A stretch of 64,000 nucleotides of DNA, taken from the NCBI GenBank assembly GCA_964035545.1, contig OZ037767.1, positions 7,760,581-7,824,580 of the forward strand, given 5' to 3'. Positions 7,404-62,297 of the stretch are shown here, piece after piece. Position numbers and translations under genes: made by a program. The notes below the pieces were generated by a model. It had not been told where the DNA came from, did no database searches, and saw only the letters and a program-made list of their open reading frames with translations. Position 1 is the first letter of the stretch, and every line of letters begins with the position of its first letter. The stretch comes from Bugula neritina (Eukaryota; Animalia; Bryozoa).

Positions 7404-7720
7404 TTAATTAGAAACTGCAGCATAAACATGGTCGGAAGCAGCTGGTTGATCTATTTGCAGAATTTCATAAGTCACATGCTCTTCTTTTTCAAAAGTTGTA
7501 TTTATGTAAGTGGGTTGGCAAGCAGTTGTAGTAGACATGATAGTAGAAGGTACTTCATAGGCTGATCCATTATTTCTATCATTGGCAACAGGTGTACGGA
7601 GGCCCAAATCTTTCATTGAGGCAACTTTTTTTCTTAGCATAATAATTATGCCACCAAATACAATTGCCACCATAAAGGTCAATGATAGGGCTGCTGAGAA
7701 TCCAATCACAATAAACGAGT
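7404..7720 (-). CDS. Gene A last exon: TM helix and cytoplasmic tail with YEVP, YIN, VTYEIL and VYAAV motifs
   Basis: Hydrophobic stretch FIVIGFSAALSLTFMVAIVFGGIIIML followed by the stop-transfer RKK; acceptor TTTTCAG ending at 7721; stop codon at 7404-7406. Confidence 0.8.
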
Positions 7721-10700
7721 CTGAAAATAACAAGTTATAAAATAGTGAAAATACTAAAGTTTACCCATTAAACGACCTACTTATATATACTTTTTAATTA
7801 AAGATGGATAATCGATGAGTTGAAAGCAATGATGGCATCCAAAAACAATATGTATATAAAACAACTACCTTTAGACATTGCTATAACTACAGTAATCACC
7901 ATGCAATCAGAATGATATTATGCAATGTACTTGGAAAAACACCATTTAGGATTATAATTATTTAGCTTTCACCCATTTAACACTATAATATCTTTTATAT
8001 ACAAAAGCTGACTTACTAGAGCTGCAATTTGTGCTGTCCTTACAGATCAGCGGCTCTCCTAACCATTCAGTCACCAACTCAGTATTCAACACACAGTGTA
8101 GGTGATGGTCTCCTCCTACTTGTTCTTTTCCTTTTTCACATTCATAGAGGACAGATTCTCCAATCTGTACTGGATCTCTTGTTATAGATGACTTAGTGCC
8201 AACACCAGCTGGTGGGTTTGAGCATGTGGTAGAAGGAGGAACTACAATCAGTTGTAATATAACAGTTTGAAAGGCAAAAAATAGTTAAAAACGCCACTGA
8301 AATTTCAATATGTATGCAAATAACATGCTTTCAGGTTTGAACAGATAAAATGGTAACTTTGTCCTATAATGTTTATTAAAAGGTTAAAGTAAGGCCCATA
8401 GCTTTTACATATTATTAGTACTCTTTACATAAAATCAAATAGTTGTGAGTATAACCAATTAGTACCACATAATCAAAAATGCTAACCTTTAAAGCTGTGT
8501 CCTTCCCCAAGTAGTTTGACATACTCATCCTCAGAGCCCTGTAAACATAATTACATTCAAGTATTATATATAAAGCCATTACAGATTCTCTGACTATAAC
8601 TAACTTGTGAGGTGGACCAAAGAGAGAAGCAGCTTTTGATATAAAAGAGAGTGCAGCTGCTAAAGCAGGCCAGTTGATTAAAGTTACCGTGAGCCTCAGC
8701 TGTTTAAAGATACACTTCTTGCCTTAAGATACTATCGCCGCACGTGTCCCAATGCGTTAGGAAGAACGCCTCATATATTAGGCTACACAGTTCTTCCCCC
8801 TTAGTGCGACTATGCGCAATCTGAGCCAGCCTTTTGATGGTGTTGGCATAGTCTCGCAAGAAAATCCACCTACTTCTTTGGAATCTTTGAAGTATGTTCG
8901 ATGCGTAACAGGCAGTCATACCGAAGTGGTTTTGGAAAGCCCACATGATGTGGTTCTCATTAAGTCTGAGAGCAAAGCTCCTGTCCTGACCTGTCAGACA
9001 AGTTCAAAGTTGGAGGACACGTACTGGTGCCAGCCATCCAGTAAAGGTTACAACATTCTCAAACTCTCGGTAGGATTGTTCCATGCACATTCCTGTCATC
9101 TTCAAAAGTCTGGGGCTTAAGACAGTACCTGTCACCAGGTGGTGCCTGACCAGTTCCATTGAATTTTTTGAAGAGCTGCCACTGGGGTCTCCATTGTGAG
9201 AGCTAGGTGCTTCTCACTGCTGCTAGTCTTCCTGGTTTTATTGGCCCCCCTTCTCTTGCTTCAGTCATCTTGCTTCTCTATTCTCGTATGCAGGCCCACC
9301 TATTATTCTGAATCCCGACGCTGCCACCATTGAGTAAGTCTCTTAGGTAGAATGCAATCAAGTGGCAAGCGTACCTCCGTAGTATAAGAAACAAGATAGC
9401 TTGTCTGTGTTGAGTATAATAATCTTTATTAGGTGTTATAAGTTTATCTATGTGTTTTTACCCAGCGAGCTTCAGTGGAAGACCGACCCTACTCTATAAA
9501 AATCTTCTCTCAACAATGTACTAAGAAATGAAAATAAGTTGAACTTTTAAAGAATATTTTTAGAAAACAGAATATATGATTTTTTATCTTCTCCTCACAG
9601 TTTCATAAATAAAGAGCAAAGTCTTGATTACCAACAAAAAATAATTGCCTGTAAGCCCACAAGTGTGTTTTGGACTTTATATATTATAGTAGTTTGCTTA
9701 CACTGTATTAACTTACATGGGGCACCCAGGTAATAGCCATCCACACATCATAGTTTGTTGCTGAAGCTAGTTTTGCATTTTTGTAACCATTGTAACTCTT
9801 GCCATCCCCAACAGTGAACTCATATCCACCAGGTGTAGGGAGCTTTGTGTCATTAGCCAGTATCTCAGCTGTTATGTAACAACTTTGAGTTAGAGTAAGA
9901 CTTGCTCTAGATATTGACTGGGAGTGAGAAGTTGAGATACAGCTACTATTAAATACAGCTCCTTTAATCCTGGTATTTCTTTGAACCAGTATCAAGTAGG
10001 ACCTGCAGCAAATGTTACCCAAAAGAATCATTCACTCAGACTATTTATTATGTGGTTTGTTTGATAAAAATGTGGCTGGTCAATAACAAGAGACGGCCTC
10101 ATGGAAAGTTTTATACGACTTCCCTGTGTTTCTTAGAAGTGTGTGGCCGAGCCCCTAAGCTAATTATGGTTGTCACATTAGAACTAATCTCAGACAGTGC
10201 GGTTGATAATATTGTGACAGGAATAATGTTGATGGCTTTATTCAAAGTTGAAAACATGTACCTTATATATGAGATAGAAAAGAAAGCTTAAGTAGCAGCA
10301 ATGAAAATATTCTTACTAAAAATTTGAAGCAGATATTATCCTTTAGATGGCTTACTACAATTTATGTGGTTTAGGTTGGTTATTACATAGTAACCTAAAA
10401 TTATTATGCTAGATAAAAATATTTTGTGGTGCTTTAATATTTGAGTTCTCTTAACAACATTTCTTCTTAAGAATTACTGGCATAACAAATTGGCTGCTGT
10501 CACAAGATGAAGAGATCTTGCAAAGTTGCTTATTATAGATTAAAAATGCTCTAGCTGAAACTTTAGTGTCAGCTTCTTTGCAGCAAACATAACCAAAATA
10601 ATTTTGATATAGATATTGTAGAGTTATGCAAATAAATTTGAAAAACCAAACTTTTCAGTAAACTGGCATCTGCATGAAAATGCAACTTTTGTGCAATCAT

Positions 10701-13700
10701 TGAATTGAGTCAAGAATATAACTTGACAATTAAGCTGAATCACCTGATCGCCACCATCTTGTTTGAACGTTACACTAAGTATACTATGTCTTGCACAACT
10801 TTGTAATCCTGGTAACTAAAATGAAATACTAAGTGATTACCTTATGTTGACAGCTTCTAGCTGAAATGGTACAATGGTGACAGTAACTTTTCCTGAAGCT
10901 ACCACAGGCTCGGTTAACAGGCTCTGATTCAAGACTAAAATTATTATTCAATTTTTGAAAAAAAAGTGAAAATTAAACAGCATCAGCAAGTTAAAAGTTA
11001 TAATTTTTAGAAAACAGCAAAAAAGAGTTAAAATGACTATGAAATGGGAGCAGTAGAATAATTGTCATTTGCCAACGTAATCGCCTGTTTGAAAAGCTGA
11101 TAATAGTGATAAGACCAATTGTAGTTTTAGAAGAGCTCTGGGATCATGCTCACTTAAGTATAAATTTTAACACAAATAAGTTTCGCTATAAAATGTTGTA
11201 GACTTTATGAACTTATGTCATGACAAAGCCAAAAGATTTAAATACGTCTGCATTTGAATATGTAGCCTTTGGTAGTGTCTTGAATAAAAATGTTAGTTAC
11301 TATTGCAGAGCTAAGCTTGTAATGTCACAATTGATATATTTATAAGTAAATATTTTTAGCATGGTATGTCTTATAGTGTTTTAATTAGGGAGCAGCTGTG
11401 GTCTAGGGGTTAGAACGTCTGCTTAGTAAACAGGAAGTCATGGGTTCGAGCCCAAACAAAGACCATTGGGGATGTTAGGAAGAACATCTAGCCATAATTG
11501 CTCCTGTTCCCTATCTGAATGAGTCCATAACACAATTTAACAAAACACTTTTTTATCAAAGTATTCTCACAGGGATGGCAACTATAAATTCATGGGTGAG
11601 TTTATAGTGTTTTAGTTGTAGTTGAAATAGTTTTTCAACAAGACAAATCATAAGCAATATGGTTACTTTGCAATGGGCTTTGTACTTCACAATGGTTACT
11701 GGTTCTTTAAATAAAGTTGTTATTTATTATTGCAGAGCATAGCAACTGGTCCCAAAATTTGAAAATAACCTCTTGAGAATATTACCCCACGATATTAAAA
11801 GTTATATGAAATGGTTAGTTTAATTAAAATGTAATACTAACTGATGAATTCAGTAACAGTAGTTGCTGGTAGACTGGCAGGACTTGGCGCGTATACTGAA
11901 CCAGCTTGAGCTGTGCATTTTATCACAGAAGCAGACGTTAGATCACATATATAGGTCTTTTCTTCACCACGATTGGTTAATGTAAAGTTTACTAATGGTA
12001 TGAGACCAACGGTATTGTTATAGTTACATTCGATCTAAAAAAGAAAGCATTTCTTATACCATTAGACACTGCATTTTGAACAAAATAGTTATGCATTGAT
12101 AACTTTATGATTTTTATCTACATTAGTAAGCGAGCCATATACAACTGGCTGACTCATCAATGCAATTTCAAGATAATATGCAATTTTGTATGCGGTTTTG
12201 GAAATATCTCGAAACAGATTGCAGCTGCCAGAAGAAAATCATAGCACTGATGACCGTTTGTTGTTATTGTAGTTATACTCACTAAATAATAAGTAATTGT
12301 TCCTGTGTATTCTTCAGGTTTGTTTAGAGATACATTTATGCAGTTTTCTTTCGCTGATTCCAAAGCAATGCTAGGTGGAGTTGTTGGTTCTACAGTAAAT
12401 TACAAAATTTTAAAAAGCAATCTTTCATATATTAGAGTAAAGACGTAATTTTGATACAAATGAATAAATTAAATGCTAGTTTCTGAATATATTCATGCTA
12501 TAATAGTGAATTTCAACTGTTTGGTAAACTTCCTAAAAACTGATTATAATATTGTGAATTTAAAAAAAGTTCTTACCAATATTTCCAGTCATAACTGTCA
12601 GTTCTTTGGTTGAATTCTTGTTTTGTTCATTTCTAACCTCCACTTCAAACTGGTAGCTGGTGTTGGCCATCAGATTAGAGAAAACATTTTGTTTACTGAA
12701 CCCTGGCTGAGGAGAACTTTTCATCCTGAAACTCAATTCTGTTGTACCACTCGTTCCACACCCACTCAGGAGTGTCTATTAGAAAGTCGCAAAACATTGC
12801 ATACAGTGTAAAAGGGCATAAGAGACTACTGACAATTAGCATGGTTTTAATTGCCAAAATGACATTATAGAGATCATATTATGTTATGTACAAATCAATA
12901 AATGAGCATACCTGGTTTTTATTAATTGTAACTTTTCGGTAACTTTTCCAGTTATCTTGATAAACATACTCTTCTACATAATCTATTTTCCCCACAAACT
13001 CTGGTGCTGAAATAAAAAAGTCACTGAACACATGTCTGAAGATGTTGTGATACACTTGAAGGTTCAACCTGTAGACTTGTAATACATTTTTTTTGCTCCT
13101 TCATTATAATTATGTTGTGTAAATTTAGTGTTAAAAGAACACTTGTAAAAATAATATAACATCCCATATACCGTGTCCAGTAACAGTGGCACCGGTAAAA
13201 ATGGCACAAGTCAAAATGGCACAAAGCATGGTAATGTAGGTACAATGACACATTTTCAAAATATGAGCGTAGGATAGGATTGGGTGTTTGGAATATAGGA
13301 GTTTAGATTTAAGAATGGGCATTTGAGTTTGGAATCGGAGGTTAAGGGCTGCGGGTTTGACTTGAGGATTTGAAAAAATGTAACGGTTGTGTGTGCCTTA
13401 TCTTCCTAAAATATTTTTATTTTCTATCATATCTTATTTAATTTTTCCTGCTATTATTACCTGTGCCACGTTTTCCTAAAATCCATATATGCATCTATAA
13501 CAGATGACAAGCAGCATACCTGTACACTCCTTAGTCATTACATGCAGAGAGATAAAAGGTCCAGAACACGTATCAGCATTTCCTGTATGATGAGACACTA
13601 GAAATCTGTAAAATGTTCTCGGATTTAACTGAGTGGCAGTAAAATTCACTCTACCATCTTTCTTCTCAACATTCAGATTTATTTCACCAGTCAAACCGAC

Positions 13701-16700
13701 TTCATACCTGTATATTGTTAGAAAATACAAAGTAGTTACTGTTATGCATACATTTTGCTTTCTTTTTAATGATCAACCGATAATAATTGGTTTGGTATCA
13801 GTATATGTTAGATGTTGATAGAAACATGCTGTTTCTTATATCACATACTTACTGTAAATTGCTGTAATTAACTTTAGGGTTACAATTAAAAAGCCAAGGT
13901 TGCGATTCCTGATTCCATTGACTGAAAGATGCTGTTACAGAAGTATAGTCTTGATATACTATACCATCATTCTTTGCTACATTGAATGTAGGGATATGAT
14001 CTACAACAATTCAAAAAGGTCTTAGTTGTAAAGTCGTTTGAATAGTTTACTTGATCAAAAATTATGTCAGCTTTTTAATAACTTTTATAAAATAAGAAAC
14101 ATATTCGGCTTGAGTGATCACCATCAGAAATGTATAGGCAGATATGAACGCATAAACTTTGTGAATTTAAAAATTCAGATGGACTATGCTTTTGATCGCT
14201 AAACCTAATAGAATGTCATTACATATTAAAAGTTAGTAAACAAAGACATTATTTGATAACATGTACAAATTTTGTGCATTGATTACCAAGCTTAACAGAA
14301 AGTCATATTATAATATAATAAAAGTTAGTAAACAAAGACATTTCAAGATGACATAAAATCAATGAATAAATAGTGTTGAAAAAAATGCGTATGTTCGAGT
14401 GATATCAGTTCATTCAGTCAATTATCATTAAATTTTGTAAACTCAAACAAATGGTTCAAAAAATAATATTTGCAAGATTGTTCATGCGTTCTTTAAAAAA
14501 AATATAAATGTGTAGCAAAAAATTCACCCTAGGGTGAGTCCAGCAACATTGAATAACATTTAATTGTCAGATTGCTAGTTAGCATGTGGGCTAGGACAGT
14601 TGTTTCCACCAGATACAAACCACATTTGAAAGCTGTTTGTTTTAATTGAGGCCAGGAAATAAATCAAAAAACTGATACAGAAATTTTAAGAAATAAAATA
14701 AATTATGTTAGTAAGCAAAATACAATAATTATACTCTACTCACCATAGCCATATATTTCAACTTCTCTGAATGCTACTCCTGTATTGCTATAGGCGAGTA
14801 TAGCAAACTGTTGCATGTATGGAGATACATTCAGTGCACATAACACATTAAAAATAACTCCTTGAGGATCATGAACATAATATTTACATCTCTCCCAGTT
14901 ATTGTTTGACCAAGAGTTTGGTGGTTTGTTTGCATCATGTGGCTCTGAGTTAGTCAGGTAAAACATCTGCTTTAGTCTGTCAGCTATAAATCATGATTAA
15001 AATAGACAATCATAAAACAAGTTATTGACTGAAAAATATAAGCCAATAAAACTGTTGTTTACGACTTTAATTCATACTTGTTGTTCAAATGCACAGCACT
15101 TAGTAATGAATATTATCATATTCAAAAAACTTCATTGTGTTCAAATCAAAAGTAGTCACAGGTAGCAATGATTTAATGTTATTCTAATCTCTTTTAAATA
15201 AAACCATATTTCATCCTACATTTCTTCTATTCTAATCTAATTTGTCACCAACAGTGATGGGTTACTCAACTAACTGATAAAAGCTTTTTTATTATGAATA
15301 TTTGCCATACTAATTGAAAATCTTAAAGATGCAGAACTTTCACAAGCTGCAAATAAGCACTGTTGAAATTACATTAACAAGAGTGATGAGAATACATTAG
15401 AGTTTGCACATTATTGACATTTGGAGTTTTATATCCCGATTTTTAGAGCTCAAATTATTTCACAAATCTTGCAATAATTTCCTAATCTTCCGATCTGCGA
15501 AGAAATGCAATAATGACTTATACCTAATATAAGGTAGAACTAATTAATGAAAATATTAATAATACAAATATATATTTTATACTATTTTTGTATTAGCCAT
15601 TTGTAATCGTCAATCAAAGGTTTTGCAATGAAACTGGACAGATCAATAATTGAAATACTAAATGTATTTAAATAGTTCAAAATCTTCTACTTGGCATTTT
15701 ATTAGGTTTGACGGTGACATATGGAACTATATACAAGTTGAAAAAAGACAAAAATTATTCGTCTTATGGAGCACCAGTGCACATAGACTCTAAGATAATA
15801 TCAAGTCAAATTAAAAGAGGTAATTGATGGTTTATGGAAGGCTTGCATTATTATGTTAACGTTACTTTGGTTATTAGTATAAAAATCGTACCACAAGGGT
15901 TTCCATTACAGTCCCCATCTCGAGCATATATTCTGGCAAACTGGAAAATGATTTTTCTCCCCAAGTCCACTTTCCACCATTCACCGGCTTTAGACTGTCC
16001 TGTGTTAGAATAGCTACTGTCTATTTTACCATCAATAGAAACTTCAGCAGACCAGTTACTATCACCTCCTGTATAAGTTGACTCCTGATAGGCTGTGCCT
16101 TTAGTAGCATAATTTATTCCTGAAATCACAAACATAATATGACATTGTATAAAAATATGCATACATGTAGTGCATGAAGATGTTCGCTGACAATTCCTAA
16201 AGTCATTAAAGTCTTAAACTAGATGTTTTATCAAAAATATATCATGGGAAAGGTTGCATGACAATATCACTATAACAAGAGAATATCCATGTCTGGTATG
16301 ATCAAAATTGCATTTTCTTTTTAAGCTATGGTCATGCAATATTTATAAAATTTGGTTGGCAATGAGTTTTATTGTTTTTATTAGAATAGATGGCGCCAGA
16401 AACAAATATTACCAGAACCTTGTATGTGACTTCACCCCACAGCTTTGATGTAAAGTCAGCCTTGCAATAGGCTAATTCCTTATGTCATTCAATGATTCAT
16501 GAATGCAGTGAAAAATTGGCACTGATCCTAGCTTTATAAAGATAAACAATTCTGTCTACTTTGAGCATTAATTAAACTTGATCTCATATGAAATATTAGA
16601 ATTAGGAATGGTTAAGTTTATGTACCAAGGTTTTCTGCAGACTAGAATTACCAACGAAATAAAAAAAACTCTTCTTATTCTATTTATTTTAAAAATTTGA

Positions 16701-19700
16701 TGGATAGCTTATCCAATGTGTGATTAATTTGTATAAGAGAAATACCAATCGGGAAAATCTTGACCTAGGAGTCATCTGGTAAAATAATAATCTTATAAGT
16801 AACACAATACGCTATTTATCAAAAAAAATTGATTTTTTAAACAAAAACTTATAGCATTGTTTTGTTAGGAAAAAACTAGTCTCTAAAAATTGGTTGTATA
16901 GGGTTTTGCAGAGTTGAAAAAGGATAAAAATTTACAATGTAACAGAAACATTGAAGTTTTAAAAACACATTTAAACAGATTTTTAATATTGAAAGAAGTC
17001 TGGGGATTGTTTCAAATATTTTTACTATTATAAAACACGAGAGTTTGTGTAAAATGCTTTGTTAAAAATTCAAAAGAAAAGCTTTTTGACAAAGCTATAT
17101 TGATTGGCCTGCTGTACCAGTCGAAGAAGATAACAGTAGATGCCCACTTAGTTGAAAACGTACTAAACTTGGTGCTCAGTATTTTTTAAACATAACACTG
17201 TGAATGCTGCATATAACTGTACAAATTATTAAAATATGTAAATGTTATAGGCCACTATCATAAGGCAGTATTTTTTATACCTAATTAATTGTAAAACTCA
17301 CTTTTCTTTGAGAAGATTTGAACTTCTTTAAGGGAGATAATTCCTTTCTGATCTCTAGAAACAGCAATGTGCCTAAACATTCTTACATAACTGAATTCAA
17401 TGACGTGGAGGTAGTTTATTGGATCATTCTGAGTAGAGATAACTTCCCAGTCAGATGTAGAGGGATATGAAGTAGTGGATACTGTCTCTTTGTTAGAACC
17501 CCACACAGTTATATTTGATAGTCTGTCACCTAAAATATAATGTCTGCCATACAAAACTTATACACTTATAACTCATTATTATAATATTATGTTAAAAAGT
17601 GTTTGCCAACAACAACCACTGTTAGATGCTAAAACTGTGTTAATAAACTCTACAGTACATTTTCATACAGGGTTAATGTTAACAACTAAATTTCACTTTA
17701 TACAGACGAACATCCTAAAGTGGTGCAAATGGACATTTCAACATCATGCAGTTATATGTCAAAAGTAGAAATGATTTTTAATCAAAAGTTATGCACCATT
17801 GTTGAAATGCTTTTTCTATGTACAGCTAAATGTTAAAGCAGTTTTTAATCATGTTTGGTTATTGTAAAAGTTTTATATCATAAATGTTTACACTTAAAAT
17901 TTACTTTCAGAGAAAGAAACTAGTTGAGAAACTGAAGTCACATAGAATGTGTAAGCTTTAGAAAAAGAAGCTACTCATGCAGTACAAAATTCTAGGAAAT
18001 CAAAACTCAGCAGGTATTTTAAGCAGTGGTGTCTATTGTAGTGAACAGTATGCAAACCTTGCAATTAAGTTGCATTTTGCTCAATTATGTATGATGTTTT
18101 TTCAGGTAAGCTAGCTGTGACTACAGTAAATTCTTGGCTTTGAAAACGGTCAGTTTGCCAAAGCCTGTGTCACTGGAGAGGTCAATTTGTAGACAGCCAA
18201 ATAAGATTGAAGGTGTGCATGAGGTAGAGCTTAATATAGCGAAGAAGATTAAGTGCAACAACCACGAGCCTAACTTTCTTATCTCTGTCATACAATGGTA
18301 ACAGTGTCAACAATGTGAATATACTAGACTCAACTAGTAAGTTATAGATCTAAAGGTTTATTGAACAAAATCAAGATGTATAAATAAATAAAATATTATT
18401 GTCATTTTAACACAAACTCATGAAAGTTGATAGTCACCATCCCTGTGAGAAGCTTAATGCCGGCTTGTATAAACAAGGGGCTATAATATCTTATAGTAAC
18501 CAAAAATGAGTTTTTGTGTTGATTTCACATGCTTGTTATTAAAGACCTATGTAATATAATTGGTGACAGTAAATAATTCTCTTAAGTCATATTATTTGTA
18601 TCATAAAAATACAGTGTTAACAGGTTTTTCATGATATAGAAACTTATTTGACATGTTGACTTGAAATTACAATTATATGATACGTCATATGAGCAAATAG
18701 TGGCTTGTCTTAAGTTAATGAAGAAACAGTATAAAGTAAACTCAATTTATTCCATATTTCTATCACTTGCATAGGATATTACAATGCATATGTATGCTGT
18801 ATGCAGTATATCTATCACTCTAAACGACTATATTAGTCAAATAGACAACGAATCAACAGTAAAGATATTCAATACTTTTGTGAGTAAAAAACTTTTGAAA
18901 ATTGAGAAGCCTCAATTAAGTTGCAGAAGTACAGTAATAAATCTTATAGATGGATAGTTTAATGAAACAAAAATATTTTGGTTGGCTATACATAATTACC
19001 TTTGAGCAGGAATATAACAAATTTAAACTTTGGATAGTAAATAATAATAACAGAAGCAGATACTTACGGTTACCCTGTCTATTGTAAAGTTCAATCCACT
19101 GAACATTATACGTGTCTCCTAAGTCAACCATCCAGAACTGTTTCTCCTTGTTTTGTGTATGGGTCACTAAGTAATCATTTGTATCAACAGCAGCTATTAT
19201 TCCATCAACACCATAACTTGGAGAAAAATTAACATAGTCGATGTAGGTGCTGCTTTCATGTGTAGTCTTTCTGTACGCCAAGTTATCTAAAAAGTACAAA
19301 TATTGGAACAAAGTAGTTGGATGCCACTACGAAAATGGGCGAGTGGCAAACATAATACTGTTGTTGCTATATATAAATTACTGTTAAGCCAACATTATAT
19401 TGATTTCAAAGCTGCAAGTAACATTTTTGCATCTAGGAGACGGCCATTCTTGAAACGGATGGGTATACAGGAATTGGTTGAATGTCAAGAAGACATCATG
19501 AAATTTGACCTACCACTAGCTAAAGACCTGGCCACTCTTGTGAAAATCACATGAAACTTGTGTGACAGTTTTTGTTATGACCAGCCACACACTCGTCAGA
19601 TAAAACCCATAATAAATAGTCAATGAATTAGTCTTGTACACAATATAAACAGTAAAAAATTGCCCAAACAAAAAAACTTTATGGAAATGAAATAATCACT

Positions 19701-27949: not shown

Positions 27950-28142
27950 ATTTCATAAGTAATAATCCATGCAAAATGTTTGCTGTCAGTTGAAGACTAT
28001 AGATTGTGTCTCCTCATTTAATTGAGACTAATTATTTCTTTACACTATTATGCAGGAATATAGTTTCAAAGGGAAAGTCACAATGACAATAATTTTGATG
28101 ATCCAGAATAGTAGGACATTTTGGAATGAGAGCGGTAAATGA

Positions 28143-44389: not shown

Positions 44390-44473
<84 letters not shown>

Positions 44474-47400: not shown

Positions 47401-50400
47401 CAATGCCATACCAGAATTATCCCCTCTGGATACAGAGGAATTTGCACTTTCCGTTAGTTGAAGGTTGGTCAGCTCATTGTCACTGCTATTGTCTTTTTTC
47501 TTGCCAAAAAATGTTTTTCTGTTGTAAGAAATGTAGAAAATAATTGAGAAATACATTGTTGTCTGAGCTACCATTATTCAGTGTACTATAAACAAAAAAG
47601 ATGTGATGTATCATACAAAAATTTTTCAGAATTGGCAACTTACACATAAAGCAAACAAAGAAAAATCATACAATAATATGCATATTTGTCTTTATAGTTT
47701 GGCAGGTTTTATTTTGAAGCACTCCCGATCTCACTTAGCCTAAGGCCACACTGTGCGTATTTACGCATGCAAAAATTGAAATCACAAGTAGCAAAGGTGT
47801 CCACTGTGCGAGTTGAGAAAACATTCGCACTTGTCGCTCTGCATTTTCAACGCAAGTGCGAATCGTCTCTGTCGTCGTCACCTAATTGGCTGGTAGTTAT
47901 TTAGCGAGCCCAATTTCTTTATTTTAGTGCTATACATTCCAGTAAGTTGCGTTTTATTAAAAGCGAGTGCGATTTAAAAATGAAAGCTTTATTTATCACG
48001 CATCACTGACGCTACAGTGGACACCTTTGCTACTTGTGGTTTCAGTTTTCGCATGCGAAAATACGCACCGTGTGGCCCTAGGCTTAAAGTCACTTCTGTT
48101 TGTTTAAACTCTCAATGTTTTTGGAAACCCTTAATGATGAAAGTATTTTAGTGAGCATAAGTTTGTGTATATCTCGACACAGTTGCAATTATGACTAAAT
48201 GACCTCTCCGCCAGCATTTAAATTTTTCAATTATTGCAAACTATGTAATATAAAAAATGTTATTGCAATAACGTTTTAGCATTTTTGGTGGCCAACAATG
48301 GAACTATAATTGCAGCAACCATGCTACCCAGCAAAAACTAGCACTACCAGAAGAGAGTCTGTTATATGTTGTAGCAGAACCTATGTGGCAAACAGATTAG
48401 CTTTTAGTTAAAAAAAAGTTGACAGTCTTAGCCAGTTGAGGTAGTTGAAAAGTTAATTGGCCTTTTTTTATAAAAAAATAATATCATGGTAGCACTGAAA
48501 TGTCTCAACACAGAAACGCAATAACAATTTTGCAAACTTTGGGAAACAATATTGACTTATAGACAGAAAATGTTGACTGTTTGCTTATAAGGCACCCTTG
48601 CGTCTAATAGAATGTTTACTTTTTATGTATAGTTGCACTGCTATATACTTTAAGAACAAAGTTTGCGTTAAAAAAGTAGATGTTTTCATTGTATTGAGCT
48701 ATTAAACATCTTAGGAAACTCAAACACAGCAAAAACTGAACCCTCCAAATATATCACATACATAGAAAATGGCACAGCTGATAATATGTTGAAGAATTGT
48801 CCACCTTAATTAAAGTTAAAATTGTACATTTATATGAGTGCTATTTATTAGTAAAAGTTTTAAACCTTTATCTGCTAACAAAACTTTTTTTGAAAACCTC
48901 TAAATTTAATCATTATTTCAACTCCGTTCATTCTAATAGTTCATTCTCGGAAACTTTCTTGCAGTATCAATGTTTACCATTCACTACTCAATATATAATT
49001 AAATGTAACCCAAAATATTATTTAGAAGGTGTTGTGTTAGAGAAAAATTTTATATGCGGTCTTGTTTATTAAAACTAATGATAGCAGCAATATTATTAGC
49101 AACTTGTGTTTTATGCAGTAGTTACATATTTAGGGTGTGTCAGTAACATGGGATGATGGAGCAATGATATATAGTAGTCAAGTTTATAGCTACTTATAGT
49201 AGTTTAGCAATGAGTTTTATAGCTTAGATGAGTAAAAATGTCATGAATTAATTTACCTTTTTATTACCACTATGACAACAACAGCTGCTACAATAACAGC
49301 CACCACTCCACCTATAGCTCCACCAATGAGTCCAGGCTTGGGTGGTTTTAAAGTAGTTGATGGGGAAATAGTCACAGGTAATGGCCCAGGGGCTAAAAAA
49401 GTGGGTATTAGCTGTACATTTTTCCCATTTGTACATTACAATAAGAACACACAAAAAGAGCTCAAATGACTAAGAAATTAAGACAATTGCCAGTTGGAAA
49501 AGCTGATAAAAGTAAATGTAGTTTTAGAAGAACTTTGTAATTTTGCATACTCATGTGTATAAACCTCAGAACAAAGATATTTATTTCACTATAGAATAAT
49601 GTGGCTTTTATGAAATAATGTTGTGACAAAATTAAAAAATTAGGATTTGTAGCATTTTGTTTTGCCTTGAATAAAAATGTTATTTATTATTGCTGAGCTG
49701 AGCTTGTAAAGTCGTAATTGGTATATTTATATAAAAAAGATATTTACAATATTTGTTATATTGTTTTAATTGTAGTTGAATAGAATATAGTGTAGTACTA
49801 ACTGAGGAATTCAGTAACAGTAGTTGCTGGTGAACTGGCTGGACTTGGTGCATATACTGAACCAGCTTGAGCTGTGCATTTTATCACAGAAGCAGACGTT
49901 AGATTACATATAGAAGTATTTTCTTCACCCTGATTGGTTGATGTAAAGTTTACTAATGGTATGACACCAGGTGTGTTGTAGTTACAATCAACCTAAAATA
50001 GAACGCATTTTTTTTGTTATTAGACTCTGCATTCTTTACAAAATAATTATGCATTGATCACTTCATGATTTTTATCTACATTAATAAACTAGCTATATAC
50101 AACTGGCTGACCCATCAATGCAGTTTCAGGATAATAAGCAATCTTGTATGCAGTTTTGGAAATATCTTGAAATAGATTACTGCCAGAGAAAAGTCATAGC
50201 ACTAATCACTGTTTGTAGTAATTGTAGTTGAACTCACCAAATAATAAGTAATTACTCCTGTGTATTCTCCAGGTTTGTTTAGAGATACATTTATGCAGTT
50301 TTCTCCTGATGATTCCAAAGCAATACTGGGTGGAGTTGTTGGTTCTACAGTAAATTACAAAATATTGGAAAGTATGCATGTAATCTATCATATATTAGAG

Positions 50401-53400
50401 TAAAAACATATTTTCGATACAAGTGAATAAATTGAATGTTAGTTTCTGAATATATTCCTGCTAGAATTGATGGTGAATTTTAACTGTTTGGTAAACTTCT
50501 TAAAAACTGATAATATAATTGTGAATTAAAAAAAAAGTTCCTACCAATATTTCCAGTCAAAACTGTCAGTTCTTTGGTTGTAGTTTTGTTTTGCTCATTT
50601 CTAGCCTCCACCTCAAACTGGTAGCTGGTGTTGGCCATCAGATTAGAGAAAACATTTTGTTTACTGAACCCTGACTGAGGAGAACTTTTCATCCTGAAAC
50701 TCAATTCTGTTGTATCATTTGGCCCACACCAACTCAGGAGGGTCTATTAGAAAGTCACAAAACATTGCATAAAGAGTAGAAAGACATAAGAGACAACTGA
50801 CGTTTAGCATGGTTTTTATTGCCAAAATGACATTATAGAGATTATAATATTATGCTATGTACAAATCCATGAATGAGAATACCTGGTTTTTAATAATTGC
50901 AACTTTCCGGTAACTTTTCCAGTTATCTTGATAAACATACTCATCTATGTAATCTATTTTTCCTACAAACTCTGGTGCTGAAAGAGAAATGTCACTGAAC
51001 ACATGAGAAAATGTTGTGATACACTTGAAGGTTCAACCTGTAGACTTATGGTACATTTTTATTGCTCCTTTTTATAAAATTGTTGTGTAAGCTTAGTGTT
51101 AAAAGAACACATGTAAAATTAATATAACATCCCACATACGGTGTCTAGTAACAATGGCACCGGTAAAAATTATGACACAAGTAAAAATGGCACAAAGCAT
51201 AGTAAAGTATATAAGTACAATGACACATTTTCAAAATATGGGCTTAGGATAAGATTGGGTGTTTGGAATAGGAGTTTAAATTAAAGATTGGGGGTTTGAG
51301 TTTGGAATTGAAGTTTAAGGGCTGAGGGTTTGAGTTTAGGGTTTGAAAAAATTCAACACTTGTGTGCCATGTCTTCTTATAATACTTTTATTTTCTATCA
51401 TAATATCTTATTTACTTCTTCCTGCTATTATTACCTGTGCCACGTTTACCTAAAATCCATATATGCATCTATAACAGATAACAAACAGCATACCTGTACA
51501 CTGCTTAGTCATTACATGCAGAGAGATAAAAGGTCCAGGGCAGGTATCAGAATTTCCTGTAGATTGAGACACTAGAAATCTGTAAAATGTTCCTGGATTC
51601 AACTGAGTGGCAGTAAAATTCACTCTACCATCTTTCATCTCAACATTCAGATTTATTTCACCAGTCAAACTGACTTCATACCTGTATATTATAAGAAAAT
51701 ACAAAGTAGTTACTGTTATGCATACATTTGCTTTATTTTTGATGACAAACAGATAATAGTTAATATTATGGTATCAGCATTTGTTAGATGTTGATAGAAA
51801 CATGCCGTTTCTCAAGTCACATACTTACTGTAAGTCAGTATAATTAAAGTCAGGAGCACAATTAGAAATCCAGGGTTGGGATTCACGATTCCATTGACTG
51901 AAAGATGCTGTCAGAGAAGTATAATCTGAATGTACTATGTCAGCATTCTCTTCTACACTGAATGTTGGGATATGATCTACAATATTTCACTAAGTGACTA
52001 GTTATAAAGTGGTTTGAATACGTGACTTGACCAAGAATTATCTCAGCTTTGTATTAACTTTTATAAAACAAGAACATATTTTACTTGAGTAATATAATAT
52101 TAGGAATGTATAAGCAAATAAACCGATATAAAGTTTTGTACATTTAAAAGTTCGAGGCTTTTTAATATTATAAACCCAATAAAAAATGGTTTTAAGATCA
52201 CACAAATAACATTTTGTAATATTGATCATTTTTTAATGAATGTTGTAATCGTTTAGCAGAAAATGCTCAGGGTGAGTCCTGGAATATTGAATAACATTTA
52301 ATTGTCAGATTGCTAGTTAGGCTGTGGGTGAGTACAGCTGTTTCCATCAGATGCAAACCACATTTGAAAACTATTTTGTGTTAATTAGGGCTATTAAATG
52401 AATTAAAAAACCGATATAGAGATTCTATGCAATAAAAATGTTATAATAATAAGCTAAATACAATAGACTCTGCTCACCATAGCCATATATTTCAACTTCT
52501 CTGAATGCTACTCCTTCATTGTTATCAGTGAGTATGGCAAACTGTTGTATGTATGGAGATACATTCAGTGCACATAATACATTAAACATAACTCCTTGAG
52601 AATCTTTAACATATCTACATATCTTCCAATTGTTGTTTGACCCATGGTTTGGTGGTTCGTTTACATCATGTGGCTCTGAGTCAATCAGGTAATACATCTG
52701 CTTTAGTCTGTCAGCTATAAAACATGATTAAAATAATTATAAAACAAGTTAGTGACTGAAAAATTTAACCAATAAAATTGTTGTTCATGGCTTAAATTCA
52801 TACTCATTGTTCAAATACACAGCGCTTTATAGTAATGAATATTATCATATTCAGAAAATTTCATTGTGTTCACATTGAAAGTAGTCACAGGTAGCAATGA
52901 TTTAATGTTATTCTAATCTCCTTTAAATAAAGCTTTTTATGCTATATTGCTTTTATTCTAATCTAATTTGTCACCAACAGTAGTCGGTTACTCAACTAAC
53001 TGATAAAGGCTATTTTTATTATGAATATTTGTCATAGTATTCAAAAAAAGTTAATTTCACAAGCTAAGTGAATTTTCACAAACTACAAATGAGCACTGTC
53101 AAACTTACATTAGCAACAGTGAGGAGAATACATTAAAGTTTTCACATTATTGAGATTTGGAGCTATACACCCGATTTTTAGAGCTCAGATTTTTTCATAA
53201 ATATTGCAATAATTTTTCATCTTCCTCATATATATATTTTTTATACTGTTTTTGTATTAGCCATATGTAGTCGTTAATTAAAGGTTTTGCAATGAAACTG
53301 GACAGATCAGTAATTGAAATACTTAATGTATTTAACTAATTCAAAACCTTCTACTTGGCATTTTATTAGGATTGACAGTGACATACAGAATTATACACAA

Positions 53401-56400
53401 GTTAGAAAAAGACAAAAATGATTGATGTTATGGAGCACCAGTGCACCTAAACTCTAAGATAATATCAATTCAGATAAACCGAGGTAGTTGAAGGTTTATG
53501 GAAGGCCTACATTATTATCTTACTTACTACTTTGTATATTAGCTATTATGCTAACATTACTTTTGTTATTAGTATAAAAATCTTACCACAGGGATTTCCA
53601 TTACAGCCACCATCTCGAGCATATATTCTGGCAAACTGAAAAATGATTTTTCTTCCCAAGTCTACTTTCCACCATTCACCAGCTTTAGACTGTCCTGTGT
53701 TAGAGTAGCTACTGTCTATTTTACCATCAATAGCAACTTCAGGAGACCAGTTATTATCACCTCCTGTATAAGTTGACTCCTGGTAGGCTGTGCCTTTAGT
53801 AGCATAATTTATTCCTGAAATCCCAAACATAATATATGGCACTATATGGAAATATGCATACATGCAGTGCATGAAAATGTTAGCCAACAATTCTTAAAGT
53901 CACTAAAGTCTTTAAGTCGATGTTTTATTAAAAGTATATTATGTAAACAGTTGTGTGACAATATCACTATAACAAGAGAGTATGCATGTCTGACGTGTGA
54001 TCAAAATTGCATTTTTTATTTAGGCTATGGCCATGTGATATTCATAAAATTCGGTCAGCAATGAGTTTTATTATTTTTAATAAATTAGTTGACGCCAGAA
54101 AAAAATGTTACTGGAAACGTGTACAAGATTCACCTCACAGCTTTGGTGTGAAATCAGCCTTGCAATAGGCTAATTCCTTGCTATTCAATGATTTATGAAG
54201 GCAGCGAAAAATTGGCACTGAACCTAGCTTTCTAAAAATAAATAATTCTGTCTACTTTGAGCATTAATCAAAGTTAGTCTCATATGAAATAGTAGAATTA
54301 GGTAAGGTAAAGTTTATGTACCAAAATTTTCTGCAGAATAGAATTAACAATGAATGTGTGGCCATGATGTAGAGTAGTAAATATGAAATACGTTTGTGAT
54401 ATTTATATTGATTGATGTTTTAACTTATGGAGCAATCTGATTGACTAATTTGATTATTATTTAATAAGATATTTATTTGAAAAACAGCGCGATGGCTTGT
54501 TTTACAGAAAATAGAAGAGAAGAGGTAAACAAAAATACAGCGATTCTAATTATTGGCACGTGATTGTCATGTGATCAGCAATGGAATTGCATGATTGTTT
54601 CTCAACAGATCTCTAATCCAAAATAACCTGTATGAGAGAAATATCAGTGGTGAAAATACTGACCTAAGAGTAATATGTTGAATTAATAAACTTAGTAACA
54701 CATAACACTAGTTATCAAGTTTTTTTTTCAACAAAAACTAACACTGTTTTGCTAAGAAAAAGCCAGCCCCTAACATATTGGGTGCATAGGGTTTTGCAGA
54801 ATTGGAAAACGGTCAAGATTTCCAATGTAATAGCAACATCGAAGTTTTCAAAACACATATAAACAGAGTTTTATTATTGAAAGAAGTAAATGTGAATTAT
54901 TTCAAATATTTCTACTGTAATAAAACAAGAGAGCTCAAGTAAAAAATGCTTTGCTAAAAATTCAGCCAAAGACTTCCTTGCCAAGGCTATTGATTAGACT
55001 TCTGTAGCAGTAGCAGAAGATTATGTTCAGGAGATTTCTTTGTAATATAGCTACGCGGTGCTCAATATTTTGTAAATAAAAGTTGGTGAATACTGCCTAT
55101 TATAGCTGTAAGAATTATACACATAATATGTAAATGTTATAGACCACTATCGTCAGACATTATTTTTTATACTTGATTAAATTGTAAAACTCACTTTTCT
55201 TTGAGAAGATTTGAACTTCTTTAAGGATGATAAATCCTGCCTGCTCTCTAGAAACAGCAATGTACTTAAACCTTTCTACACTACTGAGTTCAATGACATG
55301 GAGATAGTTTATTGGATCATTCTGAGTAGAGATAACTTCCCAGTCAGGTGTAGAGGGATATTCAGTGGTGGATACTGTCTCTTTGTTAGAACCCCACACA
55401 GTTATATTTGATAGTCTGTCACCTACAATATAATGTCTGCCATACACAACTTATACACTTATAACTCTTTATCATATGTTAAATAGTGTTCACAGCAACA
55501 ACCACTGTTAAATGCTAAAACTGTGTTAATAAACTCAACAGGCACACATTCATTCAAGCTTAGTGTAACAACTGAATTACGTTTTATACAGACAAACATC
55601 CTAGTTAAGTGATGCAAATGAACATTCCAACAACATGCAGTTATGTTAAACATAAAAATGATTTTCAACTAAAGTTATAAAACAATGCTGAAATATGCTT
55701 TTCTATATATGCACTGCTAAATAAATGTTAAGGCAATTTCTATAAATCATGTTCATTATTGTAAAAGTTTTATATTGTAAATGTTTCAAACCAAATATTT
55801 ACTTCAAGAAAAAAAAGTAGGGGAACTAAATTCACATAGAATATGTAAGCTTTAGAAAAAGAAGCTACACATGCAGTACACGATTGGAGGAAATTGAATT
55901 TCAGTAGGTAATTGTAGTGAACAGTATGCAAACCTTATAAGTTGCATTTTGCCCGTTTATATATGATGTTTCTCAGGCAAGCTGTGTCTGCATTAAATTC
56001 TTGGCTTTAAAAACAGTCACTTTGCGCCAAAACCTGTGTCACTTAAAAGGTCATTTTGTAGACAGCCAAATAAGATTTAAGGTGTGCATGAGGTAGAGCT
56101 TAATATATAGCGAAAAGGATTAAATGCAACCAAGAACCTAAATTCCTTATATCTGTCATACTATGATAATAGTGTCAGCAATGTCAATATATTAGACTTG
56201 ACTAGTAATTTATAGGTCGATAGATTTATTGAACAAAGTCAAGATGTCAAATTAAATAAAATAATGTCATTCTAAAATAAACTCATGCAAGGTGATAATC
56301 ACCATCTCTGTGGGAAACCGGTGATCGAATGGGTTTTTTTGTCAAATTGGGCTATGAAGACTTATTCAGAAGGGGCACAGAAAAAATTAGGATTGGATGC

Positions 56401-57947
56401 TTTTCTTAACATCACCAATGACATAATATGTCAGGTTAGAACTTATAGCGTCATGTTTACTGAGCAAACGATCCATAAACCCCTAGACTAAGCCTGCTCT
56501 TTATTGTTGTTTGAGCATACTTTCCTAATATTCTCAAGAGCTAATAAATAATATCACATATTTTTCAAAAGAAAAACCATTTATAGCACAAAAGAAACAA
56601 GATAACTCATTAGTGTTATAAAAAATCGTTTATATGAATAAAAAAGTAATGCTTGTACCGAGTGACAAACTTCTAGCTGTAAAATTTTTTTTTTACCGCA
56701 GAATAAACAAAATATTGCAGCAAAGTGACTAATATCTAGCTGTTAGCAATAAAATAACTGACTTAAATTACGTTAATTTAAAATATTAGCACTTATGTTG
56801 CAAATGTAAACTATCCGGTTGCATTGTAACACTTATGTTAGTAGCATGTAATAAAATTAGTCAGTAGATTACGAATAAAAACACATGACTAATTCTTATA
56901 TTAATAATCATTATTAGCAGCATTAAATATGGGATTGACGTTATTTTTATATTTTAGGATACGATGGTGAGCTTATAACTTTCGAAGCAAGTTTCTGATC
57001 TGACAGCATTTTTTCATCTTTCAACACACAAATTGAGGGCAAAAAGTCCTAAATGTCAAAAACTATGCTGCAGGAGTAACTCGAGAAGCTTAATGCCGGC
57101 TTATATGAAAAATGCTTGAATATCTTATATTAGGGAAATTAATTTTTGTGTTGGTTTCACATGCATGTTACTAAAGACTTATGATATTATATACTAACAG
57201 GTGTCAGTAAATAAGTTTGGTAAGTCATATTAATTATTGTATATAATAAAAAATACAGTGTTAACAACTTTTTTTCAGAGTATAGAAACTAATTTGTCAT
57301 GTCAACTTTAAATTACAATTATGCACTATATAATCATATAGGTAGTGGATTGTCTTAAATCAATGAAAAAACAGTATGAAGTAAATTCAATGTCTTCCAT
57401 ATTTGAACTGTTTCTATCACTTGCATAGGATATTAAAATGCATATGTATGCTGTATGCAGTATATCTATCATTCTACACGACTATATTAGTCATATAGAC
57501 AATGAATGAACAGTAAAGATACTCAATATTTTTGTGATTGAAAAACTTTTGAAAATTGAGAAGCCTCGATTAAGTTGCAGAAGTACAGTAATAAATCTCA
57601 TAGATAAATGTATGCTTTTATGAGCCAAAAAAGTTTCTGTTGGCTATACATAATTACCTTTGGGCAGCACTATAACAACTCTATAAGTTGTTAAGTAAAC
57701 AATATTAACGAAAGCAGATACTTACGGTAACCCTGTCTATTATAGAGTTCAATCCACTGAACAGTATACGTGTCTCCTAAATCAACCATCCAGAATTGTC
57801 TCGACTTGTTTTGTGTATGGGTCACTAGGTAATCATATGTATCATTAGCAGCTATTACTCCATCAACACCATAATTTGGAGAATGATTGCTTTCAGTTTC
57901 GATGTAGGTGCTGCTTTGACTTGTAGTCTTTCTGTACGCCAAATTAT
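36622..57947 (-). CDS. Gene B (5'-partial): receptor-type protein tyrosine phosphatase with F-type lectin + FN3 ectodomain and tandem PTP D1/D2 domains
   Basis: 28 in-frame GT-AG exons: 57726-57947, 55195-55422, 53587-53814, 52478-52714, 51829-51976, 51494-51681, 50883-50977, 50545-50743, 50238-50344, 49803-49992, 49257-49392 ([26 protein letters not shown]), 47412-47518, 46210-46325, 45465-45552, 44288-44358, 43587-43623, 42943-43040, 42644-42766, 41802-41950, 41191-41326, 40448-40597, 39991-40087, 39529-39593, 38789-38911, 38077-38199, 37500-37651, 37206-37341, 36622-36696. Homologues of gene A exons 1-3 are not in the window. Confidence 0.88.
40448..45552 (-). CDS. Gene B PTP D1 domain, catalytic motifs intact
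   Basis: All classical PTP motifs are present: KCRY (KNRY loop), [52 protein letters not shown]. Confidence 0.92.
44393..44470. repeat. (TA)n microsatellite
   Basis: Seen directly in the sequence. Confidence 0.97.
47738..48083. mobile_element. PIF/Harbinger-like MITE with ~70 bp TIRs and TTA TSD
   Basis: Left end GCCTAAGGCCACACTGTGCGTATT...GGTGTCCACTGT and right end ACAGTGGACACC...AATACGCACCGTGTGGCCCTAGGC. TTA flanks at 47735-47737 and 48084-48086. Confidence 0.85.
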
Positions 57948-59197: not shown

Positions 59198-59660
<463 letters not shown>

Positions 59661-59669
59661 ATAGTTTTG

Positions 59670-59843
<174 letters not shown>

Positions 59844-59934
59844 AAATGAGTGTTTATAAAACGTTACTAGAGTGCTCTATAGAAATAAATCTAGAGCATA
59901 AACATTAGAAGAAATAAAATGAGATTTGATTAAT

Positions 59935-62290: not shown

Positions 62291-62297
<7 letters not shown>

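Follow-up and report, generated by a model that had tools for sequence, protein, structure and literature searches.

The window, a stretch of 64,000 nucleotides from Bugula neritina, contains two receptor genes, A and B, both on the minus strand (Table 1). A phase-consistent GT-AG chain runs through all of A and through B from its second lectin domain (L1) to its stop, so both frames are open, as a preliminary description had stated; the signal-peptide exon and first lectin domain of B lie 7-8 kb past the window end (C3:7831497-7832623). Between A 11079-20020 and B 49485-59299 nucleotide identity is 78-86%, introns included, and the proteins are 83.5% identical over 605 shared in-window residues, which confirms that the genes are adjacent same-strand paralogs with a common ectodomain of lectin and FN3 domains. 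Each gene carries three lectin domains and not two, and position 57947, where the region first described ends, marks no more than the acceptor of the second lectin domain in B.

Table 1. Features of the receptor locus in window coordinates
Feature	Position	Strand	Evidence or remark
Gene A	26525-7404	minus	18 exons, 1,108 codons (3,324 nt), complete
A exon 1, start codon and signal peptide	26450..26525	minus	ATG and hydrophobic core
A exons 2-3, first lectin domain (L0)	25088..25707 (25504-25707, 25088-25315)	minus	Pfam F5_F8_type_C_2, 6e-8
A exons 4-5, second lectin domain (L1)	17302..19286 (19068-19286, 17302-17529)	minus	
A exons 6-7, third lectin domain (L2)	14744..16119 (15892-16119, 14744-14983)	minus	Without triad histidine
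A exons 8-13, FN3-like F1-F6	11842..14000 (13853-14000, 13520-13707, 12912-13006, 12577-12775, 12283-12389, 11842-12034)	minus	Weak Pfam fn3 matches, splice phases
A exon 14 (x), start of membrane-proximal FN3	10841..10934	minus	
A exon 15 (JM), RPTP-type membrane-proximal FN3	9717..10002	minus	Pfam Fn3_PTPRU, 1.4e-7
A exon 16 (y), last exon common to PTP-type genes	8487..8538	minus	
A exon 17, Sushi/CCP	8017..8241	minus	Pfam Sushi; phase 1-1
A exon 18, TM, 77-aa tail, stop codon	7404..7720	minus	
Gypsy-type retrotransposon remnant, GC-rich	28100..31130	minus	B-A spacer; belongs to neither gene
Gene B	stop at 36622	minus	First three exons past window end
B in-window ectodomain (L1, L2, F1-F6)	49803..57947	minus	
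B L1/L2 exons	57726-57947, 55195-55422, 53587-53814, 52478-52714	minus	
B F1-F6 exons	51829-51976, 51494-51681, 50883-50977, 50545-50743, 50238-50344, 49803-49992	minus	
B TM exon	49257..49392	minus	Joined straight to F6
B juxtamembrane exon (47412-47518) and PTP domain D1	40448..47518	minus	Pfam Y_phosphatase on five exons
B D1 exons	46210-46325, 45465-45552, 44288-44358, 43587-43623, 42943-43040, 42644-42766, 41802-41950, 41191-41326, 40448-40597	minus	
B PTP domain D2 and stop	36622..40087	minus	
B D2 exons	39991-40087, 39529-39593, 38789-38911, 38077-38238, 37500-37651, 37206-37341, 36622-36696	minus	

This bryozoan genome sets one ectodomain design on two alternative signalling modules. 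Members of the family have a signal peptide, three domains of the F-type lectin fold, an FN3 region and an RPTP-type membrane-proximal FN3, usually with a furin site; the 3' module is either a Sushi domain, a TM and a 77-aa tail (tail-type) or a different TM followed by a tandem tyrosine phosphatase (PTP-type). The array occupies 7.11-8.14 Mb of C3 with at least 12 ectodomain copies, eight having a tail exon and four having close PTP exons, so the count of tail types along the chromosome finds the design recurring; it is a lower bound (at least 12 genes on this contig), with seven genes readable in full and three further gene ends taken from genome-search loci.

Gene models

Unconstrained dynamic programming over splice sites gave exons of the wrong length, some too short and others too long, and junctions were instead set by eye and by conservation. 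Profile and structure searches were run exon by exon, and concatenated exon alignments were used for dN/dS and trees. An equivalent of exon 1 lies upstream of all seven genes, open, 88-96% conserved and with its GT donor kept; a candidate signal peptide at 27006-27167 was dropped in favour of it, since the candidate's frame is broken in paralogs. For exon x, no other frame stays open throughout the six paralogs with this exon, and its phases (1 to 2) connect F6 with JM; exon y was located through the B. neritina protein P0001 and lies in gene g1P directly upstream of the TM exon. In gene B, an automatically picked small D1 exon (43559-43610) was replaced by 43587-43623, encoding [12 protein letters not shown], and a D2 candidate at 37704-37877 was dropped, being frame-shifted or absent in paralogs.

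The sole public run with this DNA (X1) covers introns evenly over 7300-12100 and shows no splice joints; it is therefore genomic DNA. A representative search with the JM exon returned 24 matches, mostly ORF fragments and none of them a full-length tail-type protein, the tail exon found one genomic fragment, and public protein sets contain only fragments of the family. The B. neritina GenBank annotation breaks up a PTP-type gene (pieces of 276, 92 and 97 aa) and leaves out its ectodomain. The best locus match in GCA_010799875.2 is at only 83-88% nucleotide identity, and that assembly was rejected on this ground as one of the same species.

Domains of the ectodomain

The half-domain lectin exons match Pfam F5_F8_type_C and F5_F8_type_C_2 (at or near its cut-off). 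The best PDB matches of L0-L2 are FBP32 (3CQO), Sm-hPAF (3LE0), SpX-1 (2J1R) and eel agglutinin (1K12), the first two being the best solved relatives of L0; E-values of the half-domain exons are 9e-8 for L1, 1.6e-6 for L0 and 5e-3 for L2, and similarity to solved folds thus places the domains in the F-type lectin family. The fucose-binding motif H-X24-R-X-D-X4-(R/K) (PMC5712786) is absent in its strict form from all three: L0 has the H and R-Q-D with the basic residue after 7 residues instead of 4, L1 has the H, R-Q-G (G for the acidic residue) and R at +6, and L2 reads S-N-T, without the histidine, and its loop is longer. Fucose binding therefore cannot be assumed, and the glycan sensing proposed earlier stays presumptive. 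Variable sites fall in the lectin loops, some with indels, and the most variable loop, which carries indels, lies in L1.

The Sushi exon scores 21.9 bits in Pfam against a cut-off of 20.7 (E 2.3e-4), and its matches to solved structures (CR1, DAF, Crry) have E-values from 1.7e-7 to 1e-5; together with the C...C...C...W...C pattern, kept in nine paralogs, these matches identify it as Sushi/CCP. The JM exon has RPTP-mu structures as its best PDB matches, and the furin site of the paralogs, RSKR, reads RIKG in gene A. With respect to the ectodomain of R2B RPTPs (PTP-mu/kappa/rho/U), which consists of MAM, Ig and four FN3, no exon gave a MAM or Ig match; the family has in common with R2B RPTPs only the Fn3_PTPRU-type membrane-proximal domain, and B lacks even that.

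Signalling modules

Gene A ends, as first described, in an RPTP-type juxtamembrane domain, a Sushi domain, an unrelated TM and a tyrosine tail, whose 77 aa hold four tyrosines in the motifs YEVP, YINT, VTYEIL and VYAAV. Three motifs, YxN, an ITIM-consensus (V/L)xYExL and a C-terminal VYAxV, are kept across deep paralogs and persist in copies 36-53% identical; the same motifs are found in an independent JGI contig, in the order JM, Sushi, tail. The ITIM consensus [I/L/V/S]xYxx[I/V/L] in a cytoplasmic tail (PMC9546547) is matched by VTYEIL in A and by VNYEVL, VGYEPL, LSYEVL and VSYEVM in paralogs, and one copy (ESYEVL) has E at -2. Against the ITAM consensus Yxx[I/L]-x(6-9)-Yxx[L/I] (PMC9546547), YEIL-x11-YAAV has a spacer of 10-11 residues and a final V, and is ITAM-like only; YExL and YAxV also match YxxPhi endocytic signals. 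Neither the TM of A nor that of B contains a charged residue of the sort that recruits ITAM adaptors. Tails like that of A are also present on non-lectin FN3 genes (C3 7.91-7.97 Mb), and the tail thus acts as a portable module. Possible readers of the tail motifs exist in the genome, which has 30 SH2 exons as well as an SH2-SH2-Tyr-kinase gene (C7:14.37 Mb).

Gene B has the TM and motif-intact tandem phosphatase ascribed to it, with the features of a classical tandem RPTP: a single TM, D1 with HC(X5)R, WPD, pTyr loop and Q-loop, and D2. D1 carries KCRY, a variant of the recognition loop in which the N of KNRY is replaced by C, along with [37 protein letters not shown] and a Q-loop; its motifs include [24 protein letters not shown], YIAAQGP and MVQ..DQYIF. 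D2 keeps CX5R (CRDGSKR), but has WRD where WPD is usual. Tandem RPTP clusters are massively expanded in this genome, with at least 46 D1-like exons.

Intactness and selection

In the seven genes fully read there is no stop in any of 18-31 exons, and AG/GT is kept at every junction. The overall dN/dS is 0.24-0.64; by module it is 0.24-0.31 for PTP, 0.42 for the tail (0.3-0.45 at deeper divergence, dS 0.3-0.9) and 0.44-0.64 for the lectins. Given the open frames, the conserved splice sites and dN/dS below 1, both receptor classes look functional.

Exchange between receptor classes

A and B are two among at least 12 such genes and no special pair. Rather than being A's partner, as had been supposed, B groups by its ectodomain with g2A, about 100 kb off (99/99), and g1P groups with g3A (83/95). 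Monophyly of PTP-type ectodomains is rejected (AU p = 0.0125, under a tree model that recombination violates). As the ectodomain trees contradict tail type, ectodomains or tails have been exchanged between classes. Ectodomain pairs are 82-91% identical in amino acids, none near-identical across classes (best about 87%). The dS is mosaic: between g7A and g4A it is 0.01 from FN3 to tail, but 0.10-0.23 in the lectins. Between sub-clusters it is 0.7-0.9 for the tail exon versus 0.15-0.28 for the adjacent JM exon, and the tail exon, judged by this divergence, is evidently far older than its neighbour.

The juxtamembrane domain, which had seemed special to A, is ancestral to both classes; in B a 1.8-kb in-frame deletion took exons x, JM and y. 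Homology between tail-type and PTP-type genes stops after exon y, and the 3' modules diverge in the following intron. The locus illustrates exon shuffling clearly: at a single phase-1 intron an RPTP ectodomain received a new tail, and an in-frame deletion of three exons shortened a second gene. Class-crossing sequence exchange is typical of vertebrate paired-receptor clusters, and the bryozoan genes resemble paired receptors in being clustered, with related ectodomains, different modules and such exchange. The analogy with these systems stands for the shared ectodomain, the two modules, their recurrence and the exchange; it falls for the A/B partnership and an A-specific juxtamembrane domain, and is presumptive for glycan sensing.

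A model of the receptor family and its alternatives

We give about an even chance (roughly 0.5) to a tandem lectin-receptor family whose ectodomain is shared by exchange and whose phosphatase arm would oppose or reset the signal of the tail arm. The family grew through segmental duplication, and gene conversion or unequal crossing-over then swapped ectodomains between classes. Through their variable lectin loops, the two classes may recognise identical or overlapping ligands. Tail-type receptors clustered by ligand would be phosphorylated by Src-type kinases and recruit SH2 proteins: YxN would dock a Grb2-like adaptor, and YExL-x11-YAxV a tandem-SH2 Syk/Shark-type kinase or an SHP-type phosphatase. 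PTP-type receptors would bring phosphatase activity to the same contact, opposing or resetting the tail signal, and the outcome would hinge on the ratio of tail-type to PTP-type receptors.

Alternatively, adhesion or developmental RPTPs (LAR/PTP-mu-like) could simply have expanded by ordinary birth and death, with no immune-like paired logic; the tail-type members would then be phosphatase-less derivatives that serve as decoys or in adhesion during morphogenesis or larval settlement. The ancestral architecture, with its RPTP membrane-proximal FN3 and furin site, the expansion of RPTP clusters and the overall dN/dS below 1 agree with this. Against it stand the eight intact tail-type copies, whose tyrosine motifs are conserved to great depth, the clustering of variable sites in lectin loops that carry indels, and ectodomain exchange across tail types, and we regard it as rather unlikely. 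Equally, the tail-type genes might be endocytic or phagocytic lectin receptors sorted by clathrin adaptors through YxxPhi signals (YEIL, YAAV), and the PTP-type genes an independent RPTP lineage that shares their ancestry, the classes being uncoupled. YEIL and YAAV fit Yxx-hydrophobic, a strict ITAM is absent, and the tail is portable enough to sit on non-lectin genes; however, an invariant YxN and an acidic stretch before VxYExL are typical of kinase/SH2 sites and not of sorting alone, and continued class-crossing exchange is easier to explain if shared specificity matters, which makes this explanation unlikely in our view.

That gene A is a dead partial RPTP duplicate beside unrelated 3' exons, spliced otherwise than modelled, is very improbable. 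The loss of its furin site would agree with decay, but its 1,108 codons are open, its 17 GT-AG introns are conserved and match in phase, its dN/dS is below 1, and the identical 18-exon layout recurs in four neighbouring genes, in three lying farther away and in DNA from a second bugulid sample.

Bryozoan colonies fuse with or reject each other, and Bugula hosts a symbiont that is inherited vertically; to our knowledge no recognition receptors have been characterised in bryozoans, and the locus offers a concrete, testable candidate family for them. Tentatively, and with some doubt, we suggest that these genes may be a germline-diversified lectin system of non-self, allorecognition or symbiont recognition, independent of vertebrates, in which a fast-evolving F-lectin sensor shared by gene conversion is joined to an ITAM/ITIM-like tail or an intrinsic phosphatase. 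If both tail classes act on the same contacts, a balance of activation versus phosphatase arose separately in a lophotrochozoan, whose version would combine a lectin sensor with a receptor-intrinsic phosphatase as the opposing arm.

Comparison with known systems

We found no published description of such a receptor family. Like the vertebrate paired receptors (KIR, LILR, Siglec, SIRP, Ly49), the bryozoan genes are clustered paralogs with similar ectodomains, alternative modules, exchange between classes and one tail with an ITIM-consensus motif; unlike them, they combine F-lectin and FN3 in the ectodomain where the vertebrate receptors use Ig or C-type lectin domains, have no charged residue in either TM through which an ITAM adaptor could be recruited, and in one class carry the phosphatase within the receptor instead of recruiting SHP through an ITIM. 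Drosophila Draper is an ITAM-bearing engulfment receptor whose YxxI/L-x11-Yxx-hydrophobic spacing, shared by the bryozoan tail, is read by a tandem-SH2 kinase; in contrast, its ectodomain consists of EGF repeats and it has no phosphatase-bearing twin. With LAR/R2A and the R2B receptors PTP-mu/kappa/U the family shares the Fn3_PTPRU-type membrane-proximal domain with furin site, the single TM, a catalytic D1 and D2, but it has three F-type-lectin-fold domains at the N-terminus and no MAM or Ig; B, moreover, lacks the membrane-proximal domain of classical RPTPs, and in two thirds of the family Sushi, TM and tyrosine tail have replaced the phosphatase.

Hydractinia, likewise a colonial invertebrate, has in Alr a large tandem cluster of single-pass receptors, with ITAM or ITIM motifs in the tails and Syk/Shark and SHP homologues in the genome; the Alr ectodomains, however, are V-set/IgSF, no member has an intrinsic phosphatase, and there is no sequence relationship (PMC9546547). 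A review of F-type lectins, whose text does not contain the words phosphatase or fibronectin, includes mosaic members (PMC5712786); the bryozoan receptors lack the strict fucose motif and resemble these members, in particular Drosophila furrowed and sea urchin SpCRL, in joining the lectin fold to CCP/Sushi and a TM.

An array of receptor genes with two kinds of 3' end

Genes A and B, both on the minus strand, belong to an array on contig C3 (the window spans 7760581-7824580 there) in which a common ectodomain is joined to one of two signalling modules. Copies were counted by searching the whole 216 Mb assembly exon by exon, and the 254 kb around the window were mapped for every exon. The ectodomain query (L2, a lectin-fold domain) returned 12 copies, all at 7.12-8.12 Mb of C3; the TM-tail query returned 8 good copies, 2 pseudo-copies and 3 distant relatives, and the closely related PTP exon 4 copies. 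Both tail types therefore recur along the chromosome, where the preliminary description had proposed to count them. From 5' to 3' along the minus strand the order is g8P (only D2, its second phosphatase domain, lies within the mapped stretch), g7A, gene B, gene A, g4A, g3A, g2A and g1P, where P and B denote the PTP class and A the tail class.

Every gene in the mapped array starts with the same signal peptide, the lectin-fold domains L0, L1 and L2, and the FN3 exons F1-F6. Homology between the two classes stops in the intron behind exon y; at that point Sushi and TM-tail take the place of TM and PTP. Exons x, JM and y are present in the remaining PTP-type genes (g1P at 7638451, g8P at 7883583 and another at 8130026); the RPTP-type JM domain, previously described as a trait of gene A, is therefore ancestral to both classes and was deleted in gene B. 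About 1.8 kb are missing directly upstream of the gene B TM exon, which explains the absence of x, JM and y, and since these exons together span phase 1 to phase 1 the frame of gene B is preserved.

In three more genes on C3 (L030, L029 and L033), FN3 exons precede a related TM plus tyrosine tail (identity 27-39%, with YMN/YEV motifs retained), and Sushi and F-lectin matches are absent from the upstream part of these genes; the tail is therefore a portable module. Two pseudo-copies of the Sushi-tail module (L032 and L031), whose Sushi exons have in-frame stops, both lie directly behind plus-strand tail-type genes. Elsewhere in the assembly at least 46 PTP-D1-like catalytic exons occur in several tandem clusters (C1 3.96-4.23 Mb, C6 8.02-8.43 Mb, C5 0.49-2.31 Mb), and by this exon count the expansion of receptor PTPs is large.

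Gene models and domain content

Features of the locus and of related loci (window coordinates unless a contig is named)
Feature	Position	Strand	Phase in	Phase out	Remark
Gene A signal-peptide exon	26450-26525	-			conserved exon
Gene A F6 exon		-	0	1	
Gene A exon x	10841-10934	-	1	2	sole frame open in all paralogs
Gene A JM exon		-	2	0	
Gene A furin site	9950-9965	-			RIKG, in JM exon
Gene A exon y	8487-8538	-	0	1	located via B. neritina protein fragment P0001
Gene A Sushi exon		-	1	1	
Gene A TM-tail exon		-	1	stop	
Gene B, L1 acceptor to stop	57947-36622	-			phase-consistent exon chain
Gene B signal-peptide exon and first lectin domain	C3:7831497-7832623	-			7-8 kb past window end
High-copy short repeat	11325-11485				gene A F6-x intron
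(CA)n and (TA)n microsatellites	59200-59900; 62270-62430				first large intron region of gene B; long
Gypsy-type remnant	28100-31130	-			gene B 3' end to gene A 5' end
Ty3/gypsy-type LTR retrotransposon	486-4665	-			directly downstream of gene A
L030	C3:7913409-7916753				FN3 exons, related tail
L029	C3:7940415-7943759				FN3 exons, related tail
L033	C3:7971656-7975006				FN3 exons, related tail
L032	C3:8066373-8069585				pseudo-copy
L031	C3:8093936-8097136				pseudo-copy
SH2-SH2-Tyr-kinase gene	C7:14371513-14377601	+			two SH2 exons, then tyrosine-kinase exons within 6 kb

Minus-strand stop-free segments were compared with Pfam, with exons queried singly. Matches in the window were F5_F8_type_C, F5_F8_type_C_2, fn3, Y_phosphatase (8 exons of gene B), Fn3_PTPRU (E = 1.4e-7) and Sushi. 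Among solved structures, the top matches of L0, L1 and L2 are all F-type lectins (FBP32, Sm-hPAF, SpX-1 and eel agglutinin), while the Sushi exon of gene A resembles CR1, DAF and Crry and its JM exon the RPTP-mu ectodomain. The nearest public sequences are from Bugula neritina (KAF6029601), and the best-matching locus of the public assembly containing that entry has only 83-88% DNA identity to this one.

The junctions of gene A were read directly. Counting the signal-peptide exon, the gene comprises 18 exons with 3,324 bases of coding sequence (1,108 codons), and the phases from F6 through TM-tail fit without a gap, in agreement with the layout proposed earlier, in which exon 13 is followed by exons 14-18. 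Behind the TM follows a tail of 77 residues with the motifs YEVP, YINT, VTYEIL and VYAAV. Most members have a furin site, RSKR, in JM, which is kept in six paralogs and in a JGI contig; gene A and the copy at C3:7.109 Mb, where the site reads RSKG, would escape furin cleavage.

The coding chain of gene B comprises 4,368 nt (1,456 codons), including three exons outside the window. Its phosphatase had been called a motif-intact tandem: D1, the first domain, has all catalytic motifs (24 residues not spelled out here, and KCEQYWP) and D2 keeps CX5R, but the recognition loop of D1 is KCRY in place of KNRY and D2 has WRD at the usual WPD site.

Intactness and selection

The indirect evidence that these genes are alive, drawn from open exons, conserved splice sites and dN/dS, is strong. 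No stops occur in the exons of seven genes, and AG and GT are conserved at every junction; two apparent splice-site exceptions proved to be coordinate shifts from in-frame indels. The dN/dS ratio is 0.24-0.31 for PTP D1 and D2, 0.42 for the tail, 0.44 for L2, 0.47 for FN3, 0.53 for L0, 0.59 for JM, 0.60 for Sushi and 0.64 for L1. Among more diverged copies (dS 0.3-0.9) the ratio for the tail is still 0.3-0.45, and the motifs QPxY(I/M)N, xYE(V/I)L and VYAx(V/I) are retained in copies of only 36-53% identity. In the independent JGI contig, JM, Sushi and tail occur in identical order, all open, with 4/4 tyrosines retained. In run X1, the sole public run with this DNA, introns are evenly covered and splice joints are zero.

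Ectodomain exchange between the classes

As first described, the ectodomains of genes A and B are closely related; their identity is 84%, but all pairwise comparisons give 82-91%, and the two genes are therefore no special pair. In a maximum-likelihood tree of ectodomain coding sequence each PTP-type gene groups with a tail-type gene, B with g2A (99/99) and g1P with g3A (83/95). Constraining B and g1P to group with each other lowers the log-likelihood by 26 units (AU p = 0.0125, a value that is indicative only, because recombination in itself breaks the assumptions of the tree model). A mosaic is seen both in block trees and in dS: g7A and g4A differ by dS 0.01 from F1 to the stop and by 0.10-0.23 across all three lectin domains, and between sub-clusters dS is 0.7-0.9 in the tail exon versus 0.15-0.28 in the adjacent JM exon. 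Such old tails with ectodomains kept young would be expected from gene conversion or from repeated re-tailing. Amino-acid variation clusters in loops, for example the indel-bearing stretch preceding YGVDG in L1 and the stretch behind NWKxC in L2.

Ligand and signalling motifs

The strict fucose motif (PMC5712786) is found in 0/3 lectin domains: in L0 the spacing of the fucose triad is altered, in L1 Gly occupies the acidic-residue position, and in L2 the histidine is absent. Glycan sensing is therefore something that we infer. Within the gene A tail, VTYEIL matches the ITIM consensus and YEIL-x11-YAAV departs from the ITAM consensus set out in PMC9546547; these motifs are likewise compatible with YxxPhi sorting signals. 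Since SH2 exons number at least 30 in the assembly, which also includes an SH2-SH2-Tyr-kinase gene as a candidate Syk/Shark-type kinase, readers for such tail motifs exist.

Comparison with known systems

The design resembles that of vertebrate paired receptors and of the Hydractinia Alr cluster, but the array lies outside both families. In the literature we found no description uniting F-type lectin, FN3 and tyrosine phosphatase; a review of F-lectins names CCP and TM as partners, phosphatase not being among them (PMC5712786). The B. neritina genome paper reports only weak Alr1-like matches.

Repeats, mobile elements and foreign contigs

The short repeat in the gene A F6-x intron reaches a depth of 31,923 in run X1, compared with about 70-150 for most bins close by, and is thus very high-copy; genes B and g1P have a related stretch in the corresponding intron. 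The gypsy-type remnant, which fills the spacer between the two genes, contains an integrase zinc-binding domain and protease-like ORFs and has a GC content of 45-56% versus about 31% for the locus. The element downstream of gene A encodes gag/protease, RT, RNase H and integrase, with several broken frames. Small contigs of the assembly (e.g. C15, C33, C37, C44, C66, C101, C105, C133 and C176) carry dozens of intron-less protein-kinase ORFs, interrupted only by TAA/TAG apart from a single TGA in one or two of the contigs listed; this pattern is consistent with a ciliate-type genetic code and points to epibionts or contaminants as the source of such contigs.
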